Source: Mustelus asterias (Eukaryota). Taken from it: a stretch of DNA of 64,000 nucleotides. How positions within the stretch are numbered: position 1 is the first letter of the stretch; each line of letters starts with the position of its first letter. The position numbers were made by a program, and so were the translations under genes. Positions 4,321 through 59,762 of this stretch are shown piece by piece. The stretch covers positions 248,001-312,000 of the forward strand of contig NW_027590175.1 of assembly GCF_964213995.1 (NCBI RefSeq). Reading direction: 5' to 3'. The notes beneath the pieces were generated by a model. That model saw nothing but the letters and a program-made list of their open reading frames with translations. It had not been told where the DNA came from and ran no database searches.

Positions 4321-4324
4321 CTTT

Positions 4325-20669: not shown

Positions 20670-20794
20670 CTTCACCAGAGTGACGGCAGCGCTGTAGGAC
20701 ATGCTCAGGAAGAACAGGACTATGAATGTCGAAGCAGTTGTCCAGATATTGCTGTTATCATCCTGGTCTTCAATCCAGGTGGATTCTGTGGAAT
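20670..20794 (-). CDS. IGHM: IgM TM1 exon
   Basis: CCCCGTAG|AT..DSTESTWIEDQDDNSNIWTTASTFIVLFFLSMSYSAAVTLVK|GTGAGA; CART-type antigen receptor transmembrane segment. Confidence 0.95.
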
Positions 20795-25038: not shown

Positions 25039-25430
25039 TCATTGACATGAACTAACGGGGTCCACCAGTACAGGAGAAATGTTCACAAAACTGGGTTTAC
25101 CGCTGGATTTGTCAACTGTTTTGTTGATGATCTTCAAGGGGAGTGCTTCATGTCCCACCACGCAGGAGTAAGAAGTGCCGCTGGCCCACTCCTTCGCTGC
25201 AATGGATAACAGGCTGTACATGAAGAAGGAGCCATTCCCGTTCTCCGCCACCACCTCAGTGTTCCTGTAGTTCCCGGGATTCACGGGCTTGTCATTGACG
25301 GTCCACTTGACGAAGACCTCTCGCGGTGAGAAATCTCTCACTAAGCAGCTGAGGGAGACGAATTTCTGAGCGGATATTTGTTCTGCCGAGGGCAGGAGGA
25401 CAGAGACGGACGGTTCCCGCGGATTTGGAT
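25039..25430 (-). CDS. IGHM: IgM CH4 exon plus secretory tailpiece
   Basis: TTTTCTGCAG|AT; C1-set domain ([22 protein letters not shown]); tail [20 protein letters not shown]; internal donor G|GTAAA at 25101/25100 for the membrane form; AATAAA at 25002-24997. Confidence 0.97.
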
Positions 25431-25906
25431 CTGCAGAAAATTGCAATAAATGTCAATAAACTGGAGAACTCTGCAAACAATGAAACCACTGGTTAGATAT
25501 CAGAAAATTATGCTTTGCTTTCGAATTTAAATGTTTCCATTTTTGACTTCCAGCTTCGAGGAGAGGGGAACACAATCGCTTTCTCAAATAACTCGGGGCT
25601 AGACTGGAAAGTTTCAGAAAGATTACAACGCAGAAACAGGCTATTCGGCCCAACTGTTCTGCGTTGGGTTTTGTGTACCACACCAGACTACTCCCTACTT
25701 ATTCGATCATAAACCAATACCATTCTCTTCAGATCACTGTTCATTCATCAACATCCCACGCAAAAATATCTACAGGCCCAGAGCATTTAGTTAGCAGAGT
25801 TACCACTCAGAGGAGTGGTAATGCACTGAATACTAAGTATTGAACATTACACTTACACTGGAAATAGACACAGTGACGCATTTATTGCTTCAATCTCTCA
25901 GCTCAC

Positions 25907-26215
25907 CTCTTTCCTTGTGGATGGATTTTCTTAAAGGAGTCGGCAGATCCTGATGGCTCACCATGCAGTCAAACACAGCCCCACTCAGCCAGGCTTGTGT
26001 CGAGATGTTTAAGTTGCTGACCACGCTGTCAGGATCCTCTTCATGCTTTTCTGCAATCTCTGATTTCAAATAATTCCTGTCTCGGATCCAGGACACGTTG
26101 ACTCCGGAAGGAGAATTGAAAATGATACAGGTTAAGGTCACGGTCGCCTCGAGTAAGACTTGTTCTATTGGTGGTGGTTGTATTGTCACTGTGGAATCCG
26201 GGCACTGGGAAGGAC
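25907..26215 (-). CDS. IGHM: IgM CH3 exon
   Basis: CACAG|[36 protein letters not shown]|GTGAG; 309 bp, phase 1/1. Confidence 0.95.
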
Positions 26216-27105
26216 CTGTGAATGAAAAATGAAAATCAACTCGAGTTCTCCTTCAGAAGCAGGACAGCAGTATTCAGCCTAAAGGAGACGAATCGCCTTC
26301 GAGTTATCAAACTCTAACTATCGCCTTTCAACTTCTATGGTGAATGGAAAACCAGGTTGCTCTGTGAAATTATTCTCTTTATTAAAGTATTGTAGCAGCG
26401 GGATCATTCTCATGAATCAGCATTGCAGCATTCCCACACAAATAGACCATCCTGAACTCAGGAAAAATTAATGGCCGTTGGTTTATAAATAGGGTGGATG
26501 CACTTTCCAACATTTTACCCCTACGCTGTGACCTGTGAAACAGTCCGACACCTACTTTTCTCCAAATTTTACCAGCTGTGTCAGGAGAAGCTGACATCAA
26601 GTCCGCCTCGGTCACTATATTACTTCAAATTAGAAGGGCGCATTGTTTCAAGGAGAGGCAGTGGCATGGTGGTGTTATCAATGGGTTTGTAACCTAGGGC
26701 AAAAGTCTGGGGTCATAGATTCGAATCTCACCACCACAAATGGTCAAATTTGATTTGATTAAAAAACGATATTTAAAAGTCTAACGATCATTATGAAGCC
26801 ATTGCTGTAAATGGTTCACGAATGCCCTTTTAAAATGTAAATCTGCTGTCTTTATCTTGCTCTGGCATGCATGTGACTCCAGATCCACAGCAACGTCGTC
26901 GACTCTTAAGTGCTCTCAGGGATGGGCCATGGAGAACATCTCATGACAGAATAAAAATAATTGCTGATGTGATGAAATTCTGAATGAGGCGCTATCCGAC
27001 TGCAGCAAACTACATGACAGCTCTATGCTTCGCACGAACTTCAATAAATCTCTAATTCCGATTACCAGATGAATGATTTGTTTCCCCTCGGTTTGCATCC
27101 CTTAC

Positions 27106-27411
27106 CCAGAGATCCGGTGATGTTCTGACTCTGAGTGAGTCCTTGATGAGTGACCTGGCAGGTATAGACCGTTTTGCTGGACCATTCCCCAGCGGAGACT
27201 GTCAGCCGACTGCTCGCCGAGAAGTTTCCGTTCACTTCACAGGCAGGAGAGGTGACAATTCCTGTATCCACGGGTTGCCCATTCTTCAGCCACTCCACCG
27301 TCATTGACTTTGGCTGGAAATCGATGATTGAACAGACGATGGTTGCAAATTTCCTGCTTGTGATTTCTTCACTGGAACTCACGGTGAGGATAACGGTTGG
27401 GGGGATGTCGC
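27106..27411 (-). CDS. IGHM: IgM CH2 exon (5' boundary inferred)
   Basis: [38 protein letters not shown]|GTAAG; best phase-1 acceptor is TTGTTGAAG at 27412. Confidence 0.9.
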
Positions 27412-27489
27412 CTTCAACAAACACACGTTTAGACGTTACTTGAAGGTTCAACTGACAACAAATAAAATTATAACTTTTATTTTAGCACC

Positions 27490-28260: not shown

Positions 28261-28391
28261 TCAGTCAGTAGACACTTACTTGGATTTTGAATAATTCAAT
28301 TTTTTTCAGAATGCTACAGATCAGTTATAACTAAAGCCTTATACAGTTCAATCACAGCGTTCCTGTCTTGCCCAAGTTCCACAACACTTAC

Positions 28392-28691
28392 ATTGCATTC
28401 CAATGCTCTTGACGGAGTCGCTGTGTCGAACCTCACAGTCGATTTTGCTGCACTCTCCCTCTGACTGGGTGATGGTTAACTGGCTGCTCAGGGTATAGGT
28501 TCCCTTCGCGTTTCTCACTGATGGATAAGTCTTAAATCCAGTGGCGATCAGCTGCCCATTTTTCTTCCAGGTCAGTTTGGAGACATCTGGAGAGTAGTCC
28601 ATCGCCAAACAGCCGTAGGTGATGGAGCCAGCGGAGTTGTGTTGCTGACAGGAAGAGACGAGGCTGTAGAGAGTGGGCGGAGACGGTGTCG
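28392..28691 (-). CDS. IGHM: IgM CH1 exon
   Basis: TTTCCCAG|[51 protein letters not shown]|GTAAGT; 300 bp, open. Confidence 0.96.
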
Positions 28692-29654
28692 CTGGGAAAG
28701 AATAGTCGATTCAACAAGTTAGACTATTACCTGCGTTTATTAATTAGTCAAACATATTTATACAAGTATGTTTCTATATTAGGTATAACTCTTGGGGCTA
28801 AAGGGATCAGTGGATATGGGTAGTAGGCGGAGTCAGGATATTGATGAGCCGTGATCAAAGTGAATGGTAGAGCAGGGTCAAAGGGCCGAAGAGCCTCCTC
28901 TTGCTTCTATTTTCTATGTTTGAACGTCACAATTTGACTAGAATTATGAACTTAAGTTAATATTTCCCGATTAAAACCTACGCACACCTTTGAGCTTCTG
29001 TTACTCCTATCATTTGGGAATCGCCATCTTTGGAGAAACTCACATCACTGTCTCCACCTCTATCAGATTGGAAAGAGAAAAAACATTTTGATGTCATCGT
29101 AATGACATACCATTCACTGGATTAACAGAGAAGTGTAAAGAGTTTCTCCATTACTTCAGGCACTACCTATTTCTCAAACAACAGAAGTTGTCTCTTCATT
29201 CATATCAGCCACTCGCCTGATGAAAGAGCTCCAAAAGCTCACGATTGCAAATAAGCCTGTTGGAGTTCAACCTGGTGTTGTCAGACTCCTTACTGTGCCC
29301 ACCCCAACCTAGCGTCGGCATATCCACATTGTAGTTTTGGACATTGCCTGTGTTCAAACTAACTGATGCCCCTTCCTCTCTCCAACTCACTGCCCCTCAC
29401 TCCACAAAACGAAGATTGGTGACTTTGCTTCAAAACTACCTTCGGAATGAATACTTACTGAATGACCAGGAAACTCTCAATGTGATTACAAATTCAAATA
29501 ATTGCAACATTGACGAATTGAAGGGTCATACATTAATAGCAAGAGTTGGCCATTCGGGCCCTGAAGTCTCCTCCATTATTCACTGAGATTACAGATGATC
29601 TGGTTGTGGTGCTAGGTCTATTTTGCACATCCTCACTCCGCCCGTCGATCACCC

Positions 29655-30200
29655 GCTCTCTGCCCATTTTCCCCGACTCTCTGCGCTTTCCTCTGGCTCT
29701 CTGCTATTCCCTCTAGCTCTTTTCCCCTTTCACCCGGCTCTCCGCACTTCCACCTGGCTCTCTACACTTCCCTCCAACTCTGTCCCCTCTCCCCCGGCTC
29801 CCTGCCCTTTCCCTCAGCTCCCTACCCTTTCCTCTGGCTCTCTGCCCTTTCCCCCTGACTCCCTGCCTTTCCCCTTGACTCTCTGCCCTTTCCTCTGGGC
29901 TCTCTGTCCTTTCCCCGGCCTCCATGCCCTTTATCCTGGCTCTCTCCTCTTTCCCTGGTCTCTCTGTCCTTTCTCCTGGTTCTCTGCCCTTTCACCTGAC
30001 TCCCTGCCCTTTCTATTAGCTCTCTGCCCTTTCTTCTGGCTCTCTGCACTTTCTCCTGACTCTCTGCCCTTTCCCGGCTCTCAGCCTTGTTGCCCGGCTG
30101 TGGGCCCATTCCCCAGGCTCTCTGCCCTTCCCCCCCGGCTCTCTGCCCTTTAGCACGCCTCCTGTTCTCCCTGGCTCTTTGCCATTGTCCTTGGCCCTGA
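29655..30200. repeat. Pyrimidine/purine-asymmetric minisatellite, about 20-bp unit (GGCTCTCTGCCCTTTCC..)
   Basis: Roughly 25 degenerate copies read directly. Confidence 0.9.
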
Positions 30201-30319
30201 GCCCCCAGGGATTCCCCCCAGCTCTCCACATTCGCAGGGCAGCTCCCACATTTGAACACCAAACTGCCGCTTGAGATCTTTCTTCTCTCTCGTTGCAGAC
30301 CTCAACACACAGATTTAGC

Positions 30320-31832
30320 GAGTGTGAGTGAGAGAATGTGAGTGCGTGAGGGTGAGTGATTGAAGGAGTGAGAGTGGATGAGTGATGGTGTGTGAGTGAC
30401 GGAAGGTGGGTAAGTGAGGGTGAGTGAGTGAAGTTCTTTCAGTGAGGATGAGTGATTGAGGGTGAGTGAGTGAGTGTGGGTGAGGGTGAGAGAGCGTGAG
30501 TAAACGAGGGTGTGTGAGAGAGGGTGGGTGAGTGAAGGTGGCTGAATGTGTGAGTGAAGGTGGGTGAGTGAGTGTCGGTAAGAGAGAATGAATGAGGGTG
30601 AGTGAGTGAGGATGCGTGAAGGTTAGTGAAGGTGGGTGAGTGAGAGCGAGTGAATGAGGGTGAGGAGTGAATGTGACTTAGTAAGTGAGGGTGAGAGAGT
30701 GAGTGAGTCAGGGTGTGTTATTGAGGGTGGTGTGTGAGAGTGTGTGAGGGAGAATGAATGCGGATGGGTGGATGAGTGAAGGTGAGTGAGTAAAGGTGTT
30801 TGACTGAGGATGAGTGATTGAGGATCTGTGAGTTAGGGTGGGTGAACGTGAGTGACGGTGAATATGTGAGGGTGTGTGAGTGAATGTAGGTGCGTGAGTC
30901 TCAGTGAGTTTGAATGGGTCAGGTGGCGTACGTGAGAGAGAGAGGGTAATTGAGCTTGAGTGTGTGGGGGTGCGTCTGGGTGAGTGAGGGAGGGTAAGTG
31001 CGGTGAGTGAGTGAGGGTGAGTGAGAGAGATTGAGACTGGATGAGTGAGGGAGGGTAAGTGTGGTGAGTGAGTGAGAGTGATTGAGACTGGATGAGTGAA
31101 GGTGGGTAAGTGGGGTGAGTGAGGGTGAGTGAGAGTGAGTGAGACTGGATAAGTGAGGGTGGATAAGTGGGCTGAGTGAGTGAGACTGGGTGAGTGAGGG
31201 TGGGTTAGTGGGATGAGTGAACGAAGGTGACTATGAGTGTTGGTGAGTGACTGAGGCTCTGAGTGAGTGACTGAGGGTTAGTGAGTGAGGTTGAGTGAGT
31301 GATAGCGTGTGAGTGTGGGTGACTGAGTGACAGTGAGTGAATGAGGATGAGTGAGTGAGGGTGCGCGAGGGCGAGTGAGTCTGAGTGAGTGAGTGAGTGC
31401 TGGTGAGTGAATGAGGGTGTGAATGTGAGTGAATGAGGGTGAGTGAGTGAGGATGGGTGAGAGTGAGAGAGCAAATGTGTGTGAGTGATTTTGAGTGAGT
31501 GAGGGTGTGAGGGTGTGAGGTTGAGTGACTCAGGGTGAATGAGGATCAATGAGTTTCTGAGGTTGAGTGCGTGAGATTGAGTGTGTGAAGTTAAGTGTAT
31601 GAGATTGAGTGCATGAAATTGAATGTGTGAGGGTGGATGAGTGAGCAAGGGTGAGTGAGTTGGGATGAGTGAGTTGGGATGAGTGAGTTGGGATTTGTGA
31701 GTGGGGATGAGTGAGCGAGAGTGTGTCAGCGAGGGAAGGTGGGTAAGTGAGGGTGAGTGAGTCAAGTTCTTTGAGTGCAGATGAAACATTGAGGGTGAGT
31801 GAGTAAATGTGGTTGAGGGTGAGAGAGTCAGT
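30320..31832. repeat. (GTGA/GAGG)n low-complexity array
   Basis: About 1.5 kb of GTGAGTGA/GAGGGTGA variants. Confidence 0.95.
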
Positions 31833-32799: not shown

Positions 32800-33036
32800 N
32801 NNNNNNNNNNNNNNNNNNNNNNNNNNNNNNNNNNNNNNNNNNNNNNNNNNNNNNNNNNNNNNNNNNNNNNNNNNNNNNNNNNNNNNNNNNNNNNNNNNNN
32901 NNNNNNNNNNNNNNNNNNNNNNNNNNNNNNNNNNNNNNNNNNNNNNNNNNNNNNNNNNNNNNNNNNNNNNNNNNNNNNNNNNNNNNNNNNNNNNNNNNNN
33001 NNNNNNNNNNNNNNNNNNNNNNNNNNNNNNNNNNNN
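32800..33036. other. Assembly gap
   Basis: Run of N. Confidence 1.
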
Positions 33037-33526
33037 TGATAGAATGCGTTTGCACGTGGGTGAGACAGTGGGCTGTGCGTGCAAGAGGAGAGAGTGTGCG
33101 TGAGGGAAAGGATATGTGAGATAATGTGTGTGTGAGAGACAGAATGTGTGTTTGAAGAATTATTCTTTGTGTGTGACAGTGTGTCTCTTCTTGAAAATGT
33201 ATGTGTGGAGGGGCGGGGAGAGTGTGTGTGGGGAGTCTGTGTGAAAGAGTACTTCTGTGTGTGAGTGTGTGTATGTTGATGTGAAAGGGAGTGTGTCTAT
33301 TTGAGATACACGATGTCTGTGAAAGAGAGTGTGTGTGCCTGAGAGGGAGGTTATGTGTGTGGGAGAGTGTTGTGTTCATGTGAAAGACAGTGTGTGTGAG
33401 AGGGAGTGCCTATTGGAAAGCAAAATAATATGTTCATCAGTGTGTGAAACTGTGCATGGGATGGCGTGTGAGTGCGAAAGATGTGTACAATGTGTGTGGG
33501 AGATAGAAGCAATGTGGGGTGTTTGA

Positions 33527-33568
<42 letters not shown>

Positions 33569-34610
33569 AGGGGCGGGGAGAGTGTGTGTGAGCGAGAAAA
33601 AGTGTGAAACTTAGACAGAATGGATGCGTGAGTGTGTGTGAGAAATGACTGTTGAGAGAACATGTGTCTGTGATAGGTGGAGTGTTTAAAGAGAGATACA
33701 TTGGATATACATGTGTGTTCGTGTGTAAGAGAAGGAGAGACTGTGTGCGAGATTGTGTGCGTGTGAAAGGGAGGGTGTTTGTGAGAGACAGTGTTTGAGA
33801 GCAAGATTGTGCGTGTGTGAGATAATGTGTAACGGATTGAGCGTGTGAAAGAGGGAGAAATATGTACCTGTGTGAGAGAATGCGTGTGCAAGTGTCCGTA
33901 TGAGAGAGAGAGAGCATGGGAATGTGTGTGAGATTAAGTGAGAGTGTACGGAAGAGGGAATGTGAGAGGCATAGTGCATGTGTGTGTGTGAGAGAGAGAA
34001 TGTGTGCGCGAGACTGTGCTTGTGTGAGAGACTGTGTCTGTGTGTAAGAGTGTGTGTTAGAGTGTGTGCATGTTCTATGTTTGTGAGAGAGTGTTTGTGA
34101 GAGAGCCAGTGTGTGAGAGCAAGAATGTAGAGGTGTGAGATAGTGTGTGCAAGAGAAATAGAAATATGTGCGTGTCTGTGAGCGAGAGAGAGATGCGTGT
34201 GCAAGAGGAATTGTGAGAGAGCGTGTGAAGAAATGTGAGACAGCTTGAGCATGTGTGACAGAGAGTGGGGGAGAGAGTGCATGTGAGAGTGCGTGCGCGA
34301 GAGTGTGAGACTGCTTATGTGAGAGTGTGTGTCTGTGTATAAGAGAGAATGCGTGGGTGTGTGGGATGTGATTGCTTTTGTGTATAGGGGTGTGAGAGAT
34401 TGATGGAGAGAGCGAGAGGAAGTATGTATTTGTATTTGAGAGAATGCATGTGTAACGTGAGAGAGAGAGAGAATGTGTATGGGTGTGTGAGAGAGATCGT
34501 ATGAGAGAGAAAGTAAGTGTGAGTATGTATGTGTGTGTGCATGTGTGAGAGTATATGAGAGTGTGTATGTGTGTATTTATGTGTGTGAGAGTGTGTGTGA
34601 CGTGTGAAAG
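33037..34610. repeat. (GT/GA)n low-complexity array
   Basis: TGTGTGAGAGAG-type sequence, with a pure (GT)n run at about 33532-33566. Confidence 0.95.
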
Positions 34611-37600
34611 TCTATATCTAGTTAATTCAGTTTGGAAATGCACCTTCACTCCAGACAAACTCACCCACTCTCACAGTAAATGGGAGTAACAAGTGAGCAC
34701 AATATGGAGCGCGGGGCAAGGGTTGGAAAAACATTTAAATCTTTCACAATCAGTCGCAATTGAATAATTTCCGCTTTTCTCAATGAGCGAAAACTGTAAA
34801 AACTTTTTTAAAAATGACACAATCCAGGGCAAAGCCACCCACAAGATTATGCGCCCCCTCATTCACCCTATTCGCTCTCTCCATCACTGACAAGCAGTGT
34901 CAGCAGTTTGTATTATATACAAGATGCACTGCAGCAACTCACCAAGGCTCCATAGTAAACACTGTCCAAACCCGCTGCCTTTACATCCTAACAGGTCAAG
35001 GGCAGCAGTCACATAAACACGACCACCTGCAAGCTCCCCTCCAAGACACACACCATCCTGACTTGAAACAGTATCTCAGTTCCTTCACAGTAGCTGGGTC
35101 AAAATCCTGGAATTTCCTGCCTAACAGCACGGCGGATGCCTGCAGCATATGGACTGCAGTTATTCAAGAATGCTTCACATCAACACTTTCATCAAGGAAC
35201 AATAAGGGAAGATTAAAAATTCTGGCCGAGCAAATGACTCTAAAATGTCTTTAGAAGATTAAAAATAAGATGCAAAAGAATTTGACCCTTCAACTGTCAT
35301 ACCAAACAGGTCAGGGACTGCTATAGTAAGGAGCACAATATAGTAAATCTCACTTTGCATTTGCTCATCGAACATTCCCAAGGTCGGTACATCAAAGCTT
35401 AAAAATCACCGAAATCTCCCTCTCCAGTCTGACGTTTCTGCTCTGCCTGATGGTCACAATATGCTTTAGGGATCTCATTTCTGAGACTACAAGTCAAACA
35501 TCAAGTCAAACTGTCATGTTTCTCACAGTTACAAGTTTATAAAGAAATAAATCAAATTTCACTCCCTGAAATACAGCAGAAGGAACCAGAAGGTTTGCAA
35601 CCAGCCAGGCAGATTCCTGGTCCCAGCACAGTGACCACGCGCACAGAAACAGAACAGACACAAACGGTGCAACAATCCAGTGCCCAGCAGATAGATCTGT
35701 TCAATCTGTCAATTTCATTCAAACTGTTGGATTCTAATTGATCAATGGTCAACTTACAACAACAGAAAATCAATAACCTATGTTAAATTAAACTGATATT
35801 CATTTCACAACTCCTTTCGACTTTTAATTATTTCTCTGTCTCACTTCTCGAAAACTATGTAAAAATGTAATTTCGCTGAAAATAAGCAATCAAAAATAAC
35901 AGGTTCAGGACAGTTCAATGTCCCTAACAGAGACGCAGTGACACAATAAGAAGTAAACAAATCAAGAAACATTTACATTAAAAATCATTATCTGATTCGA
36001 GTTAATTTCTTAACTAAATTAATGAACAAAATAATCAAGGCAAAACACTTTATCGAGCTGAGCATAGCTGAGTAAAGAAATGTTTTGTTTCTGAATTCAT
36101 TTTCGATACAATTAAATATTCTCAAAACGGATTGTATTTTGCACGCCTGTACAGTATCCAAGTTCTTTTGTTTTAAATTAATCAGCACCAATATTATATT
36201 TTAAGTTATTGTTAATTGCCAGTTAGTTCTCTTATCAGCTGATTTGAACTCTGTAATAAAATGAGTTTTCAATCATTCAAAACGCGCTTCTACCTCCAGC
36301 ATTGTTAAATAATTAGGTTACAATTAAATCTTATACAATGTTAAACAATAGTTTCAAATTACTGAATGGAAACATTCAGAATCTGTCATTCATTTACTTA
36401 AATCCAATCACATTGTAATATTTTACTTTTCCACTTTTACTACAAATGTCGTTTTATAACCTAGAAACGTGTTAAAAATGCATACTTCTGAATTTGTATA
36501 GGCTGTAACGGCCTGGCAGTTTGAAATCAATAATAATGCATTCTAGATTTATAAAGTTAGACCATCCATATAACTTAATTACTGAACACATTGTTTAATT
36601 AAAGAAAATCTGAATTAAACAGTGCAAACACAAAGAGGACAATTGATTCAAATCCTCTAAAGCACGATGCAGAATATAAGTCCAGACTTTTTCTTCATTA
36701 TAATATTTAACAAGTATTAAACATAAGGTTCAGATATAATCAATTCTTCTATTCTGTCATTTATTCTTCCCATAATTCTATCCTGAGTTCAGCAGTAATG
36801 GGAGACATGATGTTATTATTAAGTGCAGAGCTAATATTATTTTTATAATATCAGAATATTTTTATATAAATTAATCTTTTTGAATTTCAAGCATTAACTT
36901 ATCCATCTCTAGCCAGTTTGTGTTGACACTTTACTACAATTCAAACACAATCATATGAAAAATTGCTCGAGTGTCAGCGAATTTCACCTGTCAGAAAACT
37001 CTGTTCGCTCTGTCAAGTTTATACAAACTCTTTGATTCTAATTGATCAAAGGTCAAATTACAATAACAAAAAAAATCAATACATATTTTAAATTAACCTG
37101 ATGTTCATTTCAAAACTCCCTTCGCCTTTTAACTATCTCTCCCTGTCTGTCTCAAATCCCGAAAACTGGGCAAAAATGTATTTTTTCTGAAAATGAGCAC
37201 ATCAAATATAAAAGATTCAGGGTAGTGTAATGTCCCTAACAGAGATACGGTGACACAGTAAGAATTGTAATTCATGATTTATTTTAATCTGTAAGCATCA
37301 GTTAACATGAATAAAAGTCCTAACATCTAATTATTTTATTTTTCCGAAACCTGTTTACTTTACCCCTACAAGAATTTTCAAACGCAGTTTTATTTTCATT
37401 TAGCCAGAAAACGTGTAACCGTTCAGTATCACTGAGTTGAACCAATACAGAAACAATTGAGAAACACCAAACCATTTCACAAATTTTGAGATGAGATTAG
37501 TAATTAATTATCTCGGTATCCAATTACAAATTACTTGGAAGGAATAATCTTGTTGCGATTGCGCAGAAAAAAAATGTAGTATTCGGATACAAAAATAGCC

Positions 37601-39459
37601 AAAAAGCAACGTCTTATTCTGCAAAACTCGTATTCCAGTGAATGCGAACTTAATCTGGGATATAACGACTAATGCAAAGTATCTTGTTCAGCTGAGAGCT
37701 GCTGTGGAAACAGCATGTTATCATTGAAATAATTTCTGGAATTGTCACAAAATATTTGCAGTCTGGAAAATTTTCTGGTCATGTTAATAGTGTGAAAAGC
37801 ACAACAGAACTATTAAAGGGGATGACTGCTAAATTATATCAATACAAAGTAATCTTTGGTGAATATGGAGTTATATTACCGATTAATAATTGTTTGATTT
37901 ATATTAATTTTACTATTAAACTTGTTAATGAGAAGTTTGTGATTGCAGCAACGACGTAGTGTCCGAATGAGCGTTGTACGTCATGATTTATTTTAATTTG
38001 TAAGCGTTAGTTAAAATTTATAAAAATGCTGTAATATCTTTATTTTAGTTTTTTTCCAAAACCTGCTCCTTTTCTCCCGACAAGGATTTTCAAACTCAAA
38101 GATTGTTTGCGTTCAACCAGAAAACGTCTAACCGCTCAGTGGCACCGAGTTTGAACAATGCAGAAATAATGCAGCAAAGCCAAACTATTTCACAAATTTT
38201 AAACATTCATAGTGACCAAACCACAGAATCTCCTCAACGGAAACACACCAAAACACATCAATGAGGGAATGAATCCGTTTCATGGAGAAACAGCTCAATT
38301 ATCCATTGAACAGAATCAAATGCAACATTGCAAGAAAATCTCAATATCGAATCTAGCAAACCAGCTCTTAACCAATTGTTAAAGGAAACATAAATCTGGA
38401 ATAATAACAATAGCATTGCGAGGAGATGGAATATGCCCAACAAATTAGTATTGAAACGTTATCACATTTTATTCAGGTTGGAATATATTTCAAACATATT
38501 TAAACATTTGGATGGTAAAAGCTCCAGCCATCAAATGCCACCGAGATTAAACATTGCAGGTACCTCAGATTGTGAATGCCGTGACAAACTATGTTCTGAA
38601 CGAGCGGCGTAAACCGTGGTTTAGTTTAACTTGCTTAAAATTTTAAAAATACAAACACACTAAAGCCTGTCTGTTTTCTGCCTGCACTCATGCGTCAAGC
38701 AATTGTAAACCCGCAGACTGTTCATATTCAATCACAAAGCGTGTAACAGCTGTGTCACCGAGTTTAAACAATGCAGAAACACCAAACTATTTCACAAATT
38801 TTACTTACTTAAAGTCACCCAGATACATAATCTCCTCACCAGAAAAAACGCACCACTGAGAGTCTGAACCCCGCTTCCTGCAGAAGCAGCTCAATTCTAC
38901 AAACACTTTCAACAGAATCAAATGTAACATTGACAGAAATTTTTAATATAAATTCCAGCCAATCCACCCATCACCAAAGTAATTAATGTTTATAATAAGC
39001 AGAAATATTGCATAGCAGCACCAGCACTGCTAGTGAGTGGAACATGTTCACTGGATTAATCTAGAAATTTTAGAACTTTTTTAAAATATTGGGTTAGATT
39101 TCAAACACTTGTGCAGTTGATGGTACAACCCGCAGCCACTAGATGTCACCGAGATTAAACATGACCGACACGCTGAATTGTTTAACAGACGTCAGGCTTT
39201 TAAAGTAACCCAGCCACACAGTAGCCTCAAAAGATAAACACAAAATCACAATAATTAGGGATTGAATCGCTCAGCAGCCTCTATTGTCAAGAAACAGCGG
39301 AATTCTCGAACCCCTTTGCAGCAGAATCACAGGAAACATTGTAAAAATTCTCAATCCACCAAACCCACATTTAAGTAAACGAATTGATTATTAGTATAGA
39401 CAAAAATATAAAACAAAGACACATGTAAACCAATTATTCAATAAGTGCATCGCTCTTAC

Positions 39460-39507
39460 CTGCAGTCACCGTCACCATGGTACCTTGTCCCCAGTAGTCG
39501 AAGTAGT
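39460..39507 (-). CDS. IGHJ: IgH J segment (YFDYWGQGTMVTVTA)
   Basis: WGxG motif, donor G|GTAAGA at 39460/39459. Confidence 0.98.
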
Positions 39508-39546
39508 CACAGTGTCACATTCCCTGGGCTGTGTCGTACAATAACC
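39508..39546 (+). other. JH recombination signal, 23-bp spacer
   Basis: CACAGTG (39508-39514), 23 bp, ACAATAACC (39538-39546). Confidence 0.96.
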
Positions 39547-39873
39547 GTCCCTGCACAAAATAGACACAAAACCACCATTATTTTAAATATTCACAAACCA
39601 GAGGAAAAGCAAAGTCAATTAATGTTCATTAAATTATAATTGTATTTCTGGATACCATTCTCCATTTATAAATGAGCCGAATGTTTTATATTTCACAGCG
39701 GAACACATGAACATGTTATTGATAAACACCAACCGATAATTGAGTAATTATCACAGATTTTCCATGTTCATTCTCATCATGTGGTCAGTGCTGGACATAA
39801 ATAATACTGTCCTGTGATTAAAGTTGGAATTTAAAAGTGACACTGATCCAGCCTCAATCAATTAGTGCTGAGG

Positions 39874-39942
39874 TGTTTTTGTATTGACAGTAACTGCTGT
39901 GCCATTCCAGTTATCACAGTGAGACACAGCATGACAAATACT
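39874..39942 (-). other. IgH D segment (D2 type), 13 bp ATAACTGGAATGG at 39902-39914, flanked by 12/12 RSSs
   Basis: 5' RSS CACAGTG-12-ACAAATACT (39915-39942); 3' RSS CACAGCA-12-ACAAAAACA (39901-39874). Confidence 0.96.
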
Positions 39943-40252
39943 GCGGCAGATTATTAACTGTAAAATGCAGATAGGTCATTTCACTGCTATTTCAAAAGTC
40001 TGTTTCCATGTCGTTTAAGAATGAGTCAGTGAGATATTTCAATTTTTACTGGTCATGATATTGATAAAGGGGAATTAGAAACTTTTACACTCTCCGTGCA
40101 CATTCAGCATGTAAATCAATAACAATAAAGTTGAAGTATTTTATATCTTTTAAAAAACAATGCTGCTTCTACCTATTATTTTGTCTATTCCTCATTTTGT
40201 TTAGCATTCGGCAGTGGCACTGGTCACATATTTAAGCAAAGTCTTTCTCTGA

Positions 40253-40290
40253 GGTTTTTGTATGAGGATGTCGCTGTGCTCAGCACTGTG
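40253..40290 (-). other. RSS with 22-bp spacer 3' of the V(D1) exon
   Basis: CACAGTG (40290-40284), CTGAGCACAGCGACATCCTCAT, ACAAAAACC (40261-40253). Confidence 0.96.
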
Positions 40291-40606
40291 ACCCACTGCT
40301 GTATTGCACAGTAATAGATGGCGGTGTCTTCAATCTTCAGGCTCATCATGTCCAAAACGAAGATGCTCCTTGAAATGTCTTTGGACGGAGTAAATCGATT
40401 CTGAATCCCTGGGGCGTAGTAGATGGTGTTAGATGAAGTGTAGTAGAGAGTCAGCCACTCCAGCCCCTGTCCGGGAACCTGCCGGATCCAGCCCATCCAG
40501 TCGCTGCCAAGATTGAAGCCGCTGGTTTTACAGGTCAGTTTGAGGGAGCCTCCTGGACGCCCGGTCTCTGCCTCTGGCTGAGTCAACACAACCTCCGACT
40601 GAACAC
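40291..40606 (-). CDS. IGHV: IgH V exon, apparently pre-joined to D1
   Basis: TTTTTACAG|GT; [44 protein letters not shown] then TACAGCAGTGGGT; open frame. Confidence 0.97.
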
Positions 40607-40737
40607 CTGTAAAAATATATCAAAAACCCCGAGGATTAATCCGGGTGAAATGATTGCTGATTCTGCAACAATCCAGAGATAGACTAACACTGAGACAGTA
40701 GCAGTCAGGCTTGCACAATAAAAAAAAATCTACTCAC

Positions 40738-40783
40738 CGGATAAGAAAGTCAGCAAGAAACTGAGAGAAATCGCCGACCTCAT
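40738..40783 (-). CDS. IGHV: IgH leader exon (MRSAISLSFLLTFLS)
   Basis: ATG 40783, hydrophobic peptide, G|GTGAGT donor in phase with the V acceptor. Confidence 0.95.
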
Positions 40784-40859
40784 CCTTCTGGTAAATTGGG
40801 GGAAATGGTTGTGTCAGAAACTCAGTGAACAAACCAGCTCCCGGACTGTTGGATTCCGG

Positions 40860-40930
40860 TCCCAGTGAGCGGCATTTAAATACCCGGCAGAAGGGGGCGG
40901 CTTTCCAGGCGCCGCCTGTTGATTCCCTGC
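40860..40930 (-). promoter_or_regulatory. VH promoter with TATA-like TATTTAAA (40882-40875) and GC-rich upstream segment
   Basis: About 90 bp upstream of the leader ATG; no ATGCAAAT octamer seen nearby. Confidence 0.65.
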
Positions 40931-43900
40931 TGGAGGCGGCGACAGGATCCAGGTCCCACCTTCCACACCCCAACAGAATGGACTTCCAGATTTACAATGG
41001 GTGAATATTAAAATGGCCATTTTATCTGTATCGGGATATTTGTTTGGCTGAATATGTTCAATGTATTGTCTCCATTATTGCTGATGGTGATATTGCAATT
41101 CATCATTTCTTTATTTGAAATAACTGATTCCATTGTAAATATGGTGATTTTATTACCACGCCCCCAAGAAGAACACAAATCTAAAAATGATTAAATAACA
41201 TTTTTGGAAAATAAAGAGACCGTCAGTCTATGTTGCAACAATTCCGGGTCTGTCACATTACAATAATAAAGCATCATTTATCAGAAGAATTGTTATCGAT
41301 TTCTGTAACTAAATGCGGAGTATGAACAAAGTGATTGCATTTACAGTGCGGATGGCTATCACTGTACTGTTTGGGTTTGGAGATGAGAAGAAACTCTCAC
41401 ACAATACAATGTTTCTCCTTATATTTGTCAAACTGCCCAATCTCGAAGACAGCCCTTTGAAAATAATAAGAATCCCGCCTTCCTGATAATTAAGTAGTGA
41501 GTTGACAGAGAAACATAAATTTAACATCGACTTTTGACAGAGAAGTTAATGAATCGGAACGGACACGGAGATCATTAAAGTTCTCCTTCAGCATCCAAAT
41601 CGTGGCAGCTCACTCTATTGGCCACCGGCTGTCTAATATTCATTGGTATTGGGAACACAGGGTATCAGGCCTTTGCTGCACATTGCACAACATCACAAGA
41701 ATAAATGTTTTACCTTCCATTGAATCAGGTTATGAACTGATCATTTCTCCACTCATTAGCAGCTATGAGAGGAACTCTTCAATAATGGAAATCAGATTAT
41801 ACTGTACAATAGAACACGGTGTAAATCAGGTACAAGAGACGCTGCTGTTTAAATAGGGTGCAAAACTTTCAGTATATTCCAGGAATCCCTGTTGTTCGTG
41901 TCAGTTTTATGATGTTCTTTTAATATTATTTCGATGCATTTTTGCCATTACAGTGATCTGAATTGACTGGGGAAATGGGACCATCAACATCTCTCTCTCG
42001 CATTTCATGAAGTGGTTAATAAACAGCCTTTAATTATTGGAATGACATTTACTTGGAAGTTATACAAATGAAAAATCATCCGGTCACTTTACTGTTTTGC
42101 GATGCTATTTACTCACATAATGAACAGGACATTGAATGAAAATATTTGATTAGAATGATTCCGATTTAACATGTGTCATTCTTGTGGGAATGAAACATTT
42201 ATTCTTTAAATGGCTGAATCCCAATTTGTCCATTCAGGTTCACGCTAATCTGCCCCACACAGTATTTGGCAGCAATCCAGCCCGCTGTCAAATGCTCAAA
42301 GTTATTGACAGGAAGCATCTGGGGGTGTTTGTGCAGTAGATCTGTTTTCTCAGTACTGACCGCTTGGCTGCAAGCCAACGTCAAACCCTTCACATTGTCA
42401 ATGAGCCCTATTTGTAAAGAAATCTACCCAGCAACAGTACTGGAGGCAATTTAATATTTTAAGTTGTAAGTCTATATGGATTTGACCCATCTCTCAAGAA
42501 AGACAATTTATGCAGCTTCTCTGACACCCTGTTAGCAACAATGATGATTTTTCCAACACATCAGGATATTGTCATGGATGGATCGAAAGAATTACAGGCA
42601 GACTGAGAGATGACTCAGGTAGACGATACATGTTGTAATACATGAACATATATGCTTGTGTATTCTTTCCCTATCTCGTTCCATGAGATGTTTGAGTTGT
42701 TGGAACGACGAGAACATTATGCCTGTCCCAAATTCACTTGAACTGAATGGTTTTCTAGGCCACTTCTGAAGAGTCAGCCATTTTGTGTCCGTCTGTAGTC
42801 ACATTCTTGTGAGACCAGGTAGCAATGGCAGATTTCCCTCATTGGGGGATCAGAGAGGGTTCTATGGTCGCCATTAGAATGTATTCCATATTTATTAATT
42901 GAATTCAAATTCCACCAGCTTCCTCCGATTTAAATCCCTGTCCCTGTCCCATCATTGTCCTGGGCCTCTGGATCACTGGACCAATTAAATTAATATTACG
43001 TCACCATCTGCGCAAACAATAAATGAATGACTGTCTTGATGCAGGAATGAATGACAGTTGAATGAATGATAGTTGGATGAATGACAGTTGGATGCCTGAA
43101 TATTTTGATTGAGGAATCAGTGAATAAATTGATAGATGCATTGTTAAATGGTACTGAAAGATGTTGTTCTACATTCCCATATTTGTACTTCACTGGTCCA
43201 TAAATTGAAACAGCTCCTTTATCCCATTTCTGTCAGTCTAATAACGTCAATACTGCCAGAGGTTCTGGGAGAAATCCAACCCTAGTTGGACCAAGGAGCG
43301 GCACAGGCTTGGAGGGCCGAAGGGCCTGTTTCCTGTGCTGTACTGTTCTTTGTTCTTTGTTCTATGTCCTAGTTTCTAGGGAGCGTGCAAGCTGATCCTC
43401 ACGAAAATAAGAGGGGATTTTCCTGCGGCACGGATGGTTCCTTTCTCTGCTGATGCTGAATATTCATATCCAAGATCGAAAGAGGGAACATGATTTGGCT
43501 GAGGAGGGAGGATTGTAATATTTGAAACATGTGCAGCAAATCACTCAACATGCCCTCACCCAAATTAGTGAAGGTAACAAGCTGTAAAATAAATAACGTG
43601 GCAACAGATATATTGTGAAACTCACTGGAAAACTACAAGTGTTACATTATTTCCCAAAACTGTGTAATAATGAATCGGGATTTAAAGAATCAGTAAAATC
43701 ATATTTGGTGCAGGTAGTTTAATTTGTATGATTACTTTGGAAATCATCACACCAGTTATGATTCAGGAGTTTAAAGCGCAGAGACTGCTGGGTAGCTACT
43801 CATGATCCTCGGTCTGTATTCATTCAATTTCCAACTGAATTCTGGGACAGATTTTATCCTTGGTGACAAAAAGGTGTCAATAAATGTTAATATCAATAAA

Positions 43901-44280: not shown

Positions 44281-45235
44281 ACATAAGAACATAAGAACAT
44301 AAGAAATAGGAGCAGGAGTAGGCCATCTAGCCCCTCGAGCCTGCCCCGCCATTCAATAAGATCATGGCTGATCTGACGTGGATCAGTACCACTTACCCGC
44401 CTGATCCCCATAACCCTTAATTCCCTTACCGATCAGGAATCCATCCATCCGCGCTTTAAACATATTCAGCGAGGTAGCCTCCACCACCTCAGTGGGCAGA
44501 GAATTCCAGAGATTCACCACCCTCTGGGAGAAGAAGTTCCTCCTCAACTCTGTCTTAAACCGACCCCCCTTTATTTTGAGGCTGTGTCCTCTAGTTTTAA
44601 CTTCCTTACTAAGTGGAAAGAATCTCTCCGCCTCCACCCTATCCAGCCCTCGCATTATCTTATAAGTCTCCATGAGATCCCCCCTCATCCTTCTAAACTC
44701 CAACGAGTACAAACCCAATCTCCTCAGCCTCTCCTCATAATCCAAACCCCTCATCTCCGGTATCAACCTGGTGAACCTTCTCTGCACTCCCTCCAATGCC
44801 AATATATCCTTCCTCATATAAGGGGACCAATACTGCACACAGTATTCCAGCTGCGGCCTCACCAATGCCCTGTACAGGTGCATCAAGACATCCCTGCTTT
44901 TATATTCTATCCCCCTCGCGATATAGGCCAACATCCCATTTGCCTTCTTGATCACCTGTTGTACCTGCAGACTGGGCTTTTGCGTCTCATGCACAAAGAC
45001 CCCCAGGTCCCTTTGCACGGTAGCATGTTTTAATTTGTTTCCATTGAGATAGTAATCCCATTTGTTATTATTTCCTCCAAAGTGTATAACCTCGCATTTC
45101 TCAACGTTATACTCCATTTGCCATATCCTCGCCCACTCACTCAGCCTGTCCAAATCTCTCTGCAGATCTTCTCCGTCCTCCACACGATTCACTTTTCCAC
45201 TTCTCCGTCCTCCACACGATTCACTTTTCCACTTC
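44281..45235 (-). mobile_element. Young 5'-truncated CR1 LINE with intact C-terminal ORF2
   Basis: Uninterrupted frame of about 280 codons; (ATAAGAAC)n tail on +. Confidence 0.93.
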
Positions 45236-45847
45236 CCAATGTCATCACCCTCTTCAATTTCCCCCAAATAAAAAGAAAGGGTCATCCCGACTCGAAACTT
45301 TGACTCTATTCTCTTTCCACAGATGCTATCTGACCTGTTGAGATTTTCGGAATTTATTGCTTTTGTTTCAGTTTCTAGAATCCACAGTATTTTCCAATTA
45401 TCAAAATGCTGAATACAATTGGTGAAATAATTGTTTATCTGTATGAATTGATGTTAATTGGTGAATTGGAACAACCCCGCTTGGATATTCCCCTCCAAGA
45501 CGCTTATAAACCTGACTTGGACATATATTACCATTCCTTTACTGTCGCTGGGTCGGAATCCATGAGAACCCTTCCTAACAGCACTGTGGGTGTACCTACA
45601 CTGCAGATTGTGCAGCGGTTCAAGAAGGCGGCTAACCACCAGCAACTAGCAATGTGAAACAAATTATAGCTTAGACAGTCGCCCACCTTCCATAAAGTAA
45701 TTTTAAATAGACTAACCTTTGTGAATGAATGAGAATTGGTGAATGCATTTATTAAATTGCGAATGGATGGTCATTGGGGAAATTAATTAGTATCTTTCTG
45801 AACATTTATGACATTCTCCTTATTTGCTGGAAGATTTAAGGTTTGTA

Positions 45848-52130: not shown

Positions 52131-52629
52131 ATCTTCGGTTTTCAGTTATTTCCAAAGAGAAGTTGTCGTTTGAAGTATAAAAGCAAATTACTGCGGATTC
52201 TGCAATTGAAACCAAAAGAGAAAATGCTGGAAATCTCAGCAGGCCTGGCAATATCTGTGAGGAGAGAAAATAGCTGACATTTCGAATGTTTTGACAAAGG
52301 GTAATCTGGAATCGAAAAGTCAGTTCTTCTCTCTCCTTACAGGTGCTGCCAGACTTGCTGAGATTTTCCAGCATTTTCTCTTTACTTTGTTTGAAGTGTC
52401 TTCGGGTGGAGTAAATTGATTCTGTATCCTGGGGCGGAGGAATTGTAGGCTGACCCAAGACTATCGTACTGAAGAAGACACTGTAAACACTGTTCAGGGA
52501 CCTGTCGGACCCAGACCATTCAGTTACTGCCAACATTGAACGCGTTGGCTTTACAGGTCAGTCTCAAAGAGTTTCAGGGACGCCCAGTTTCTGCCTCTCG
52601 CTGAGTCAACACAACCTCCGATTCGACAC
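52131..52629 (-). pseudogene. IGHV: Orphan VH pseudogene
   Basis: [39 protein letters not shown]; acceptor AG>AA; TGA at 52576-52574 and 52522-52520; split in FR3 by an insertion; YYC and RSS missing. Confidence 0.92.
52177..52388. mobile_element. Palindromic element inserted into pseudo-VH, with 9-bp target-site duplication
   Basis: GTTTGAAGT at 52168-52176 and 52389-52397; arms AGAGAAAATGCTGGAAATCTCAGCA and TGCTGAGATTTTCCAGCATTTTCTCT. Confidence 0.85.
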
Positions 52630-52659
52630 TTGTAAAAATATCAAAAATCCTATGAAAAT

Positions 52660-52965
52660 AAAACGCCACGCACTCCGGACATACTCGCTCACCTTTTTCC
52701 ATCGGGAACAAGATACAAAAGTCTGAGGACACGTATAAACCGACTGAAAAACAATTTATTTCCTGCTGCTATCAGACGTTTGAATGGACCTACGTCGCAT
52801 TAAGTTCATTGTTCTCTACACAACAGCTATGACTGCAAAATTACATTATTCACTCTCTCCCTTCCTTCCCTATATCCGTTATGCTCTGACTGTATAGTGC
52901 GCAAGAAACTATAATTTGCACTGTGTACTAATATATGCGATAATAATAAGTCAAATGAAATCAAA
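52660..52965 (+). mobile_element. Rex1/RTE-like 3' fragment inserted in the pseudo-VH leader intron
   Basis: Same family as 3931-4320; flanked by duplicated AAAATATCAAAAA-like sequence. Confidence 0.65.
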
Positions 52966-55811
52966 TAAAATATATCAAAAACACCAAGGATTATTCCCGG
53001 TGAATTGATTGCTGAACAATGGAACATTCCAGAGACAGACTAACACCGAGGGAGGAACAGTGAAATCCATTGTCATGTCTCTGCTAGTCCAAGAGGTGAA
53101 ATTGCATTTGAGCATCTGTTAGAGAAAAGAAACAATTTCATTGTAAATTAAGTGCCTTTATTTCTGCACCCCTTCACAAGGGAATGGACATACACAGATG
53201 ACATTACCTTATCAGGGTAAAGATGTCAGTCTGATTTGCAATAATTCTGTGTCTCTAACACTTTACAGCGAAATATAATTCATTAGAAGAATTATTATCG
53301 ATTTATGTAACTTAATGCTGGGATGATTGTGTTTCAGGTGTGGATAGCTATCATTGTAATTTGGGACTGGATATAAGAAGAAGGGAAGCAGTGGCCTCGC
53401 GTTATTATCGCTAGACAATTAATCCACAAACTCAACTAATGTTCTCAGGACCCGGCTTCGAATCCCGGAACGGCAGATGGTGGAATTTAAATTCAGTAAA
53501 AACGTCTGGAATTAAGAATCTACTTATGACCATGATATCATTGTCGAATGTGTAAAAACCTATCTGGTTCATTAATGTCCTTTCAAGCAGGAAATATGCC
53601 GTCCTTACCTCATCTAGCCTACATGTGATTACAGAGCCACAGCAATGTGTTTAGCTCTCAACTGCCCTCGACAATGGGTGGGCAATAAATATTGATCAGC
53701 CAGCGGCACCCATATCCATAGAATCCCTGCAGTGCATTAGGAGCATATCGGGCCCACACCGACAACGCTCCTAGCCAGGCCCTGTTCCCATCCCTGCTAA
53801 TTCATTTGATTCTATGGGACAATTCATCATCGCCAATCAACCTAATCGGCATATCTTTGGACAATGGGAATAAACAGGCAGACAATTGGAGAATGTGCAG
53901 ACTACACACAGACAGTGACCCATTCCGGGAATTGAAGCACGGTCCCTGATGCTGTGAAGCAGCAATGGTAACCACTATGCCACCGTGCCGCCCATGAATA
54001 AATTAACAAAATAAACTCCTTATCTGATACAATGTTACACCATATATTTCCCCAACAGCTCCTTAACCCTGTGAAAATTAACGGTGAAAGAAAACTTCTT
54101 GACTTACAATTAAGCATTGAGTTGACAGAGAAACATAAAATTGACATTGACTTTTGACAAAGAAGCTAATGAATTAGAACGGACACGGCAATCAGGAAAG
54201 TTCTCCTTCAGCATCCAAATCATGACAGATCATTGTATTGGCGAGCAGCTGGTATTGGGAACATAAGATATCAGGACTTTGCGGCATAATGCACAATATC
54301 ACAAGAATAAATATTTTATCTTTCACTGAACCAGGTTATGAACTGGTCATTTCTTCACTCATTGGCAGTTATGAGAGGGACTGTTAAAAAATTGAAATCA
54401 GATTATGCTGGACAACAGAACATGTTATACATCAGATATAAGTTTTTAATGAGGTGCAGAACATTGAGAATATTCCAGAAATCCCTGCTGTTCAAGGCAG
54501 ACATATGATTTTGTTTTACTTTTAATTATTTTCATTTTTGTGCCTTTTCACTGATCTCATGGGACTGAGGGATTGGGGACATCAGCATAAGTTGTTCATA
54601 AAGAGGCTTTAATTGTTGGAAGGACATTTCTTTGGAAGCGATACAAATGAAATAGCATCAAGTCAATTGACTAGTTTCTGATACTTTTTAATCACATAAT
54701 GAAAAGTGCATTCATTTAAAATATTTGCTTAGAAGAAAAACCATTTAAAATGTGCCTTCCTTTTGGGAATAAAACATTTATTGTATAACTGACGAAGTCC
54801 CATGTTATCCTTACAGATTCACGTTAATCTGTCCTACGCAGTATTTGGCAACAGTCCAGCCTGCTGCCAAATACCCAAAAATATTTACAGGAAGCATCTG
54901 AGGGTGTTTGTTCAGTAAATCAAAAACCTGTTTCCTCAGTACTGAACACTTGGCTGCAAGCCAACTTCAAACTCTCAGCATTGTCAATGGGGCCTATTTA
55001 TAAACAAATCTACCCAGCAACAGTACTGGAGGCAATGTAATTATTTTTAAGTTGCAAACATCTATGGATGTTTCCCATTTCTTCTGAAAAGAAAGTATTC
55101 AGCTTCTCCGGCACCTTGTTAGCAACAATGATGGTCTCTCCAACACAACAAAACATTGATGGATGGATATTAAAAAAAATACCGGCAGATTATGAGAGTT
55201 GATTCAAAGAGGTGATATATTTTATACTAGATAAACATGTATGCTTGTGTTTTCTTTCACTTCATTCTTCCATGGGACGTGAGAATCTCTGGAAAGGCCA
55301 ACATTTATTCCCTTTCCCTAATTTCTCTTGAACTGAGTGGTATGCTAGGGCATCTCAGAAGGCATTGCCCACTTAGTTATATTGCTGTCCGTCTGCAGTC
55401 ACATCCTGATGAGACCAGGTAGGGATGGCAGATTTCCTTCATTGGGGAATCAGAGAGGTTTATCTGGTCGCTGTCAGTATGTATTCCAGATTTATTGATT
55501 GAATTCAAATTCCACTAGCTGCCAGGGTCGGATTTAATCTCGTGTCTCCACATCATTGGCCTGGGCTTCTGGATTACTGGTACACTGGCATTAATATTAC
55601 GCCACCATCTACCCAACAATAAAGGAATACTTGCGTTGATGCAGGGATGAACGATAGTTGGATGCCTGAATGTTTTGCTTGAGAAATCAGAGAGTGGACA
55701 GATGGATGGGACGATAGCTGGTCCTAAACTTTGCTGTTCTACATTCGCATATTTGTGATTTACTACTTCAAAAATCGAAGCAGGTCCTTTATTCCAAGTG
55801 TGTCAGTATAT

Positions 55812-57800
55812 AAGACCATAAGTCCATAAGACATAAGAAATAGGAGCAGAATGAGGCCACTCGGTCCATCGAGCCTGCTCCCGCCATTCAATGATGGCTG
55901 ATATTTTTCTCATCCATATTCTCTTGCCTTTTCCCCAGAACCACTGATCCTCTTATTAATCACAAACCCATCTATCTCTGTCTTAAAAACACCCAATGAC
56001 CTGGCCTCCAACCTTCTACGTCAAGAGATCCACAGATCCACCACACTCTGGCTGAAGAAATTCTTCCTCAGCTCTGTTTTAAACGATCGTCCCTTTAGTC
56101 TGAGGTTGTGCCCTCTGGTTCTGGTTTTTCCTACGAGTGGAAACATCCTTTCCACGTCCACTCTATCCAGGCCGCGCAGTATACTGAAAGATTCAATAAG
56201 ATCTCCCCTCATCTTTCAAAACTCCAACGAGTACAGATCCAGAGGACTCAACCGTTCCTCATACAGCAAGCGCTTCATTCCAGGAATCATTCTTGTGAAA
56301 CTCCACTGGACCCTTTCCATGGCCAGCACATCCTTCCTTAGATATGGGGCCCAAAACTGCTCACAATACTCCAAATGGGGTCTGACCAGAGACTTATACA
56401 GCCTCAGAGGTACATACCTGCTCTTGTATTATAGCCCTCTCGAAATGAATGCTAACATTGCATTTGCCTTCCTGAACCTGAACTTTAACCTTAATAGAAT
56501 CTTGAACAATGACTCCCAAGTCCCTTCTTGTTTTTGATTTTCTCAGCATTTTCCCATTTAGAAAATAGTCTATGCCTCCATTCCTCCTTCCAAAGTGCAT
56601 AGCTTCACACTTTTCCAAATTGTATTCCAGCTGCCACATCTTTGCCCACTCTCCTAACCTGTCCAAGTCCTTCTGCAGCCCCCCCTGCTTCCTCAGTACT
56701 ACCTGTCCCTCTGCATATCTTTGTATCATCTGCAAACTTAGCAACAGTGCCTTCAGTTCCTTCCTCCAAATCGTGAATGCATACTGTGAAAAGTTGTGGT
56801 ACCAGCACTGACTCCTGAGGCACACCACTAGTCACCGGCTGCCATCTTGAGAAAGACCCCCTTTATCCCCTCTCTCTGCCTTCTGCCAGTCAACCAATCC
56901 TCTATCCATGCCAGGATCTTACCCTTAACACCATGTGCACTTAAAGTATTTAACAGTCTCCTATACGGCACCTTGTCAAAGGCCTTCTGGAAATCGAAAT
57001 AAATCATGTCCACTGGCTCTCATTTATCTAAATTCCTTGTTACCTCCTCAAAGGACTCTAACAGATTTGTCAGATATTACCTCCCCTTGACAAAGCTGTG
57101 CTGACTCAGTTCTACTTTATCATGCACTTCCATGTACTTTGCGATCTCATCTTTAATAATGGAATTTAAAGTCTTGCTAGTGACCGAAGTCAGGCTAACC
57201 GGTCTATAATTTCCCGTCTGCTGCCTCCCTCCCTTCTTAAACAGTGGTGTTGCATTCGCTACTTTCCAGTCCTCTGGTACATTCCCTGCCTCCAGTGATT
57301 TCTGAAAGATCACCACCAATGCCGCCACAATTTCCTCAGCTATCTCTTTTAGAACCCTGGGGTGTAGTCCATCCGGTCCAGGTGATTTGTCATCTTTCCA
57401 TTTCCCCAGAATCTTCTCCTTAGTGATGGCCACTGTGCCCCCGACTCTCCTGGAGCTCTGGCATTCCACTGGTGTCTTTCACCGTGAAGACTGATGCAAA
57501 GTAATATTCAGTTCCTCTGCCATTGCTTTGTTTCCTATTATTACTTCTCCAGGCTAATTTTCCAGTGGTCCAATGGCAGTTTCTGCGTCTTTCTTATCTT
57601 TTTTAATATTGAAATAAAACTCTCTCTGTCTTATTTTATATTACTAGCTAGCTTACACTTATATTTCATCTTCTCCCCCCTTATTGCGTTTTTACTGGTC
57701 CTCTGCTCGCTTTTCAATGCGTTCCAATCCTCTGGCTTCTCACTAATCTTTGCCGCTTTGTATGCTTTAACATTTGCTTTAATGCTGTGCTTGACCTTTA
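55812..57800 (-). mobile_element. CR1 LINE ORF2 remnant
   Basis: [48 protein letters not shown]; CATAAG-type tail. Confidence 0.92.
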
Positions 57801-59535: not shown

Positions 59536-59762
59536 TCTTCAAAATCTTCAAATCCAAGATGGAAAGAGGGATTAGGTTGACGGGGGAGGATTGTAATATT
59601 TGGAACATGTGGCCCTTTCCCGTGCAACAAATCACTCAACATATCTTCACCCAAATTAGTGAAGGTAACAGGCTAACAAATTAATGAGGCAATTGAAATA
59701 TTGTGAAACTCACTGGACAGCTTCGAGTGGTAAATTACTTTCCAGTACTGTGTAAGTGTGCA

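Follow-up and report, generated by a model that had tools for sequence, protein, structure and literature searches.

Cartilaginous fish are known to carry IgH clusters whose gene segments are joined in the germline, either partly (VD-J, VD-DJ) or fully (VDJ), as set out in the openly accessible text of several reports (PMC5192425, PMC4279169, PMC8355894). In the accessible part of one of the papers on this subject, Lee et al. (2000) argued for RAG action in germ cells and reported that no expression could be detected for the joined H genes of horned shark (PMC2193156). Partial joining in the germline also has relatives outside this group, and opossum has a partly germline-joined VH (Wang and Miller, 2012, as cited by others). 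In the soma, VD-D-J is an abundant one-step intermediate in nurse shark thymus, at least in the portion of the description that is open (PMC2435157). Here, we describe a cluster of Mustelus asterias in which this very configuration is found in an assembled genome. It lies in a stretch of 64 kb, the whole of which was analysed and is called the window below, and it is a complete shark IgM heavy-chain minilocus in which a RAG-type joint between V and D1 has probably become germline, leaving D2 and J free.

The cluster resembles the partly joined clusters of cartilaginous fish (VD-J, VD-DJ) and the fully joined VDJ genes of horned shark and nurse shark (IgM1gj) in its minilocus arrangement, in the fusion of segments at their coding ends and in the loss of the signals between them, joining having been ascribed in those cases, so far as the accessible text goes, to RAG in germ cells (PMC2193156, PMC5192425, PMC4279169, PMC8355894). 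Unlike those clusters, it has undergone the first join (V-D1) only. Nurse shark type III IgNAR, with its germline D1-D2 fusion, is similar in having one partial join, fewer rearrangements and a restricted CDR3, but, as far as its available description shows, it belongs to another isotype and joins D to D rather than V to D (PMC4622739). Opossum VH and the VD-fused pseudogenes of chicken also have a V-D fusion in the germline; these belong to tetrapod translocon loci, and the chicken copies serve as gene-conversion donors without signals (PMC2193156 for chicken). The same configuration, in which the D1-D2 and D2-J intervals are both preserved, is that of the nurse shark IgM somatic one-step (1R) intermediate (Malecek et al., 2008; PMC2435157), which in the accessible part of that paper is seen in lymphoid DNA only, with germline bands in erythrocytes, whereas the joint described here stands in the consensus of an assembly. 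Germline VD-D-J was not found in the open literature, in which reviews name VD-J, VD-DJ and VDJ; the primary horned shark paper (Kokubu, 1988) may describe one. As a name, VD-D-J is used in a single paper of the open literature searched, and there for the somatic form (PMC2435157).

Leader, V, D2, J, the four Cmu exons and TM1 are all encoded on the minus strand, from 40783 to 20670, forming a minilocus of single orientation (Table 1). An earlier note, made from the letters of this DNA, had read it as a V fused to D1 with D2 and J still free, and every element was found in its place.

Table 1. Features of the IgM cluster, in window coordinates
Feature	Position	Strand	Basis
Leader exon, ATG at 40783..40781, donor GTGAGT	40738..40783	-	splice/sequence reading
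V exon to last V-derived base (GCAA)	40304..40606	-	Pfam V-set, E 3.5e-15
D1 coding sequence TACAGCAGTGGGT, 13 nt, fused in frame to V	40291..40303	-	sequence; free D1 counterpart in contigs
D1 3' recombination signal CACAGTG/22/ACAAAAACC	40253..40290	-	both motifs 0 mismatches
Parts of D1 signal: heptamer; 22-nt spacer; nonamer ACAAAAACC	40284..40290; 40262..40283; 40253..40261	-	
D2 5' recombination signal AGTATTTGT/12/CACTGTG	39915..39942	-	signal scan
D2 coding segment ATAACTGGAATGG, 13 nt	39902..39914	-	sequence
D2 3' recombination signal CACAGCA/12/ACAAAAACA	39874..39901	-	signal scan
J recombination signal GGTTATTGT/23/CACTGTG	39508..39546	-	signal scan
J segment YFDYWGQGTMVTVTA, donor GTAAGA	39460..39507	-	sequence
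Open frame with Cmu1 exon	28351..28710	-	Pfam C1-set, splice sites
Open frame with Cmu2 exon	27065..27481	-	Pfam C1-set, splice sites
Open frame with Cmu3 exon	25893..26252	-	Pfam C1-set, splice sites
Open frame with Cmu4 exon and secretory tail	25042..25452	-	Pfam C1-set, splice sites
TM1 exon, approximate bounds	20670..20794	-	splice sites, sequence

The V exon is intact. It is separated by an intron of 131 nt from a leader exon whose peptide, MRSAISLSFLLTFLS, matches shark IgH leaders among the proteins compared, and its end is TATTACTGTGCAA, framework 3 leading into TAT TAC TGT GCA A with the last A at 40304. From 40304 to 40303, V runs unbroken into D1, and scanning the window in full, on either strand, places no signal in between; the signals of V and of the 5' side of D1 are gone from the cluster together with the V-D1 interval, and the two segments meet coding end to coding end. 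The translation across this joint is open and in frame (...YYCAIQQW), as the earlier note had read it. D1 is thereby locked in the IQQW frame, its alternative frames being YSSG and TAVG; the latter is found at the place of D1 in two fetched proteins, P0022 from Mustelus asterias and P0029 from Scyliorhinus torazame. In a protein search with the read-through open reading frame of V, no V of the same species was found; the best match, at 77%, was from Chiloscyllium punctatum, and the M. asterias record P0022 was also returned.

Recombination signals were sought on both strands of the whole 64-kb window at up to three mismatches, with block shuffles as the control. At this threshold, 16 signal-like sites are present in the real window against a mean of about two in the shuffles. 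Only the D1 signal has no mismatch and only the J signal has one, and from V to D2 the D1 signal is the sole one detected. The spacers of 22, 12, 12 and 23 nt allow pairing under the 12/23 rule, and all four heptamers begin with CAC. The gaps between signals are 310 bp (D1-D2) and 327 bp (D2-J), in agreement with the earlier description of a single free D with 12/12 signals and a single J with a 23-type signal, spaced at about 310-330 bp.

The constant region is no less complete. The C1-set matches of the four Cmu frames have E-values from 5e-10 to 2.5e-22 (Pfam); the frames are bordered by AG acceptors and GT donors, and J splices to Cmu1 in frame. All exons are open, with a V-set and four C1-set domains, consensus splice sites and TM1, and the exons and the remaining signals are intact, as had been claimed. 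A retro-copy reading was rejected, because the gene retains its leader intron as well as its J-C intron. The frame with Cmu1 agrees with P0022, which is recorded at NCBI for M. asterias, at 114 of 114 residues, 15 of which are read into the intron. P0022 itself reads, from its protein letters only, as a fully VDJ-joined model in which the D1 of the window is used in the TAVG frame; when it was used as a protein query, further M. asterias proteins were not found. A 132-aa protein labelled 'Salmonella enterica' (P0044), from a contig of 480 bp, shares 81% identity with the constant region of shark IgM and probably represents contamination.

The J-Cmu1 intron, with a length of about 10.7 kb, contains long short-unit repeats and an N run. 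Tandem repeats at 29655-31762 and 33354-34670 extend over kilobases in units of 14-20 nt and are G-rich on the plus strand, that is, C-rich on the coding strand of the gene; the N run at 32800-33036 divides the tract. Upstream of the cluster by about 12 kb and in the same orientation is a broken V fragment with stops (52391-53061, minus strand), which is 75-82% identical to the V exon and leader intron and ends after the start of framework 3. It lacks a D1, and it is the only trace of a sister cluster within the window. Elsewhere in the window, C2H2 zinc-finger-like frames with HTGERPF-type linkers were seen by eye at 1458-1886 (minus), 8006-9019 (plus) and 14631-15413 (plus), as were reverse-transcriptase-like retroelement frames at 4298-4666 (plus), 16059-16619, 44386-45453, 57080-57478 and 59186-59635 (all minus).

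Unjoined counterparts of the fused segments were found in public data. Logan contigs of four public runs, three of them being three samples of organism A and the fourth organism B, were matched to 39200-41100 at a likeness of at least 90%, and 32 of 532 pieces were listed. Among the pieces listed, free D1 occurs in contigs of X1 (two), X3 (one) and X4 (one). These match the D1 side up to 40304 and continue beyond it as CACAGTG, 12 nt and ACAAAAACT; on the gene strand, the free D1 is ATACAGCAGTGGGT with a 5' 12-spacer signal and with a 3' side the same as that of the window. In organism B, a free D1 of slightly different sequence is found at 40294. The V side is represented by one X3 contig that matches down to 40304 and then reads GAGAC followed by the heptamer CACAGCG, so the sister V ends in GCAAGAGAC before a heptamer of its own. 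Since D1 exists free with a 12-spacer signal and a sister V has its own heptamer, the window, by comparison of these sequences, holds a true V-D1 coding joint and not an ordinary V terminus.

These copies also bear on the claims about the origin of the joint. The identity of D1 is borne out by the free copies, and a RAG-type joint that deleted the V-D1 interval agrees with the presence of both unjoined partners, RAG being the presumed agent. The earlier note had itself named the finding that would speak against it, namely that this V end with its 22-bp-spacer signal is the normal end of V; the sister V does not support this. As for trimming, a loss of a few bases from V (5-6 nt) and the lack of added nucleotides hold, but the supposed loss of two bases from D1 does not, as the free D1 indicates 0-1 nt. 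The loss is 5 or 6 nt for V and, correspondingly, 1 or 0 nt for D1 because the A at 40304 fits either segment and may originate from V or D1, and the count for V is approximate because the sister V is not necessarily the immediate parent.

Could the structure then be the normal unrearranged end of a V family, or an error of assembly? Either is scarcely credible. A normal terminus was rejected, given that the sister V goes on as GAGAC and a heptamer and that D1 exists free; moreover, of the 16 fetched proteins, 14 extend to the YYC motif, which is followed by CAR in seven and by CAIQQW in none. A misjoin, for its part, would not take out both signals with its breakpoints precisely at the two coding ends.

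A different question is whether the joint was made in the germ line or in a lymphocyte. VD-D-J is, in the accessible text, a documented and common somatic intermediate in thymus and spleen of nurse shark (PMC2435157), and since it is a regular one, the view that a one-step (1R) rearrangement of a lymphocyte or thymocyte was captured in the assembly, the germline being an ordinary V-D1-D2-J, must be taken seriously. In keeping with that view, bridging of 40303/40304 was seen in none of the 32 of 532 contig pieces listed, which are unitig-like. We nevertheless regard somatic capture as improbable. A consensus assembly reflects what most reads show, but somatic joints vary from cell to cell and would contribute about one read each; B cells, in the part of the report available, rearrange only a few clusters each, and somatic joints are described there with N-region addition, as opposed to the joint without added nucleotides seen here (PMC2435157). 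In addition, the consensus sequence around the joint extends over at least 64 kb, and its flanks are unique. Judged by this consensus, the joint would be a germline one.

Other contigs illustrate the surroundings of the joint in the samples. The D1-D2 interval at 40022-40279 is present in X1, X3 and X4 with 0-1 differences, long stretches of V and of the D2-J interval are identical in X4, and the D2-J interval adjoining D2 is also identical in X3; therefore, those samples contain the cluster of the window or an allele or paralogue that is nearly identical to it. At 39906 within D2, the base of the window is absent from every matched contig of the four runs, all of which read the other letter. 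Contig depth is highest at V, the D1 signal, D2 and J and drops in between, which fits elements that are common to many clusters. On intersegment DNA, a depth of about 160 in a run of 2.4 gigabases exceeds what plain whole-genome sequencing on that scale should give, and the runs may thus come from RNA or from enriched libraries. No match was obtained with a 57-aa protein query spanning the joint, and the exact 33-nt junction gave 0 matches in JGI metagenomes, two blanks of little weight.

At least three of the contigs listed join V through D1-like letters to the end of D2 while keeping the D2 3' signal intact (VDD-J forms), with joints from 39904 to 40304 in X1 and X4 and from 39904 to 40307 in X5. 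Such contigs may stem from sister clusters joined in the germline, or else from partly rearranged genes, as transcripts or as DNA. In P0002 from Chiloscyllium punctatum, YYCTR is followed by AVGSWI and then by letters compatible with a heptamer and nonamer (protein letters only), so the assembly of this bamboo shark may contain a VDD-J joined cluster.

How would a VD-D-J gene be completed? The V-D1 join would have removed the 23-type signal of V, the 5' 12-spacer signal of D1 and the DNA between them, the V-D1 interval being about 400 bp in nurse shark. Because the fused VD1 keeps its 22-spacer signal, two joins instead of three would complete the gene under the 12/23 rule. In a lymphocyte, VD1 would first be joined through this signal to the 5' 12-spacer signal of D2, and the 3' 12-spacer signal of D2 would then be joined to the 23-spacer signal of J. 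The start of CDR3 would be fixed as CAIQQ, followed by W unless it is trimmed, with the reading frame of D1 fixed as well, and one of the three sites of junctional diversity would be lost. Completion by two joins, the locked frame and the lost diversity site are thus expected from the anatomy of the cluster and established V(D)J rules, and the gene would presumably be put to use.

Such use could be disputed. A germline VD-joined cluster may also be a dead end that is never or almost never completed and expressed, a neutral by-product of RAG in germ cells. The junction letters of the VDD-J contigs differ from those of the window, and therefore none of the three joints listed derives from the window joint, as a dead end would lead one to expect; D2 also has a stop in one frame. 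All exons, however, are open around a joint that is in frame, the CAC of the heptamers is kept in all four signals and the D1 signal is perfect. Furthermore, the germline-joined genes of nurse shark are expressed early in life according to the accessible text on them (PMC5192425, PMC2193156, PMC4279169). We therefore hold a dead end to be possible but rather unlikely, and a germline VD-D-J cluster that can still be completed remains the preferred reading.

Taken alone, the cluster is probably one more example of a class known since 1988, perhaps in a configuration so far unnamed for the germline. The principal evidence for RAG action in shark germ cells comes from germline-joined antibody genes, which are thought to supply pups with a ready-made repertoire. 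As a tentative extension, the germline IgM clusters of this genome may form a graded series, halted at each possible first or second join (VD-D-J, V-DD-J, V-D-DJ, V-DDJ) and produced by RAG in germ cells without a fixed order, as in the soma, with the present cluster functional and contributing a semi-invariant CAIQQ start to the early repertoire. Such a series, if true, would be a fossil record of RAG joining without a set order in shark germ cells. A cluster halted after its first join with the rest intact provides a clean natural substrate for following whether such a gene goes on to completion and use, which of the D1 frames is tolerated and how frequent joining is in the germline.
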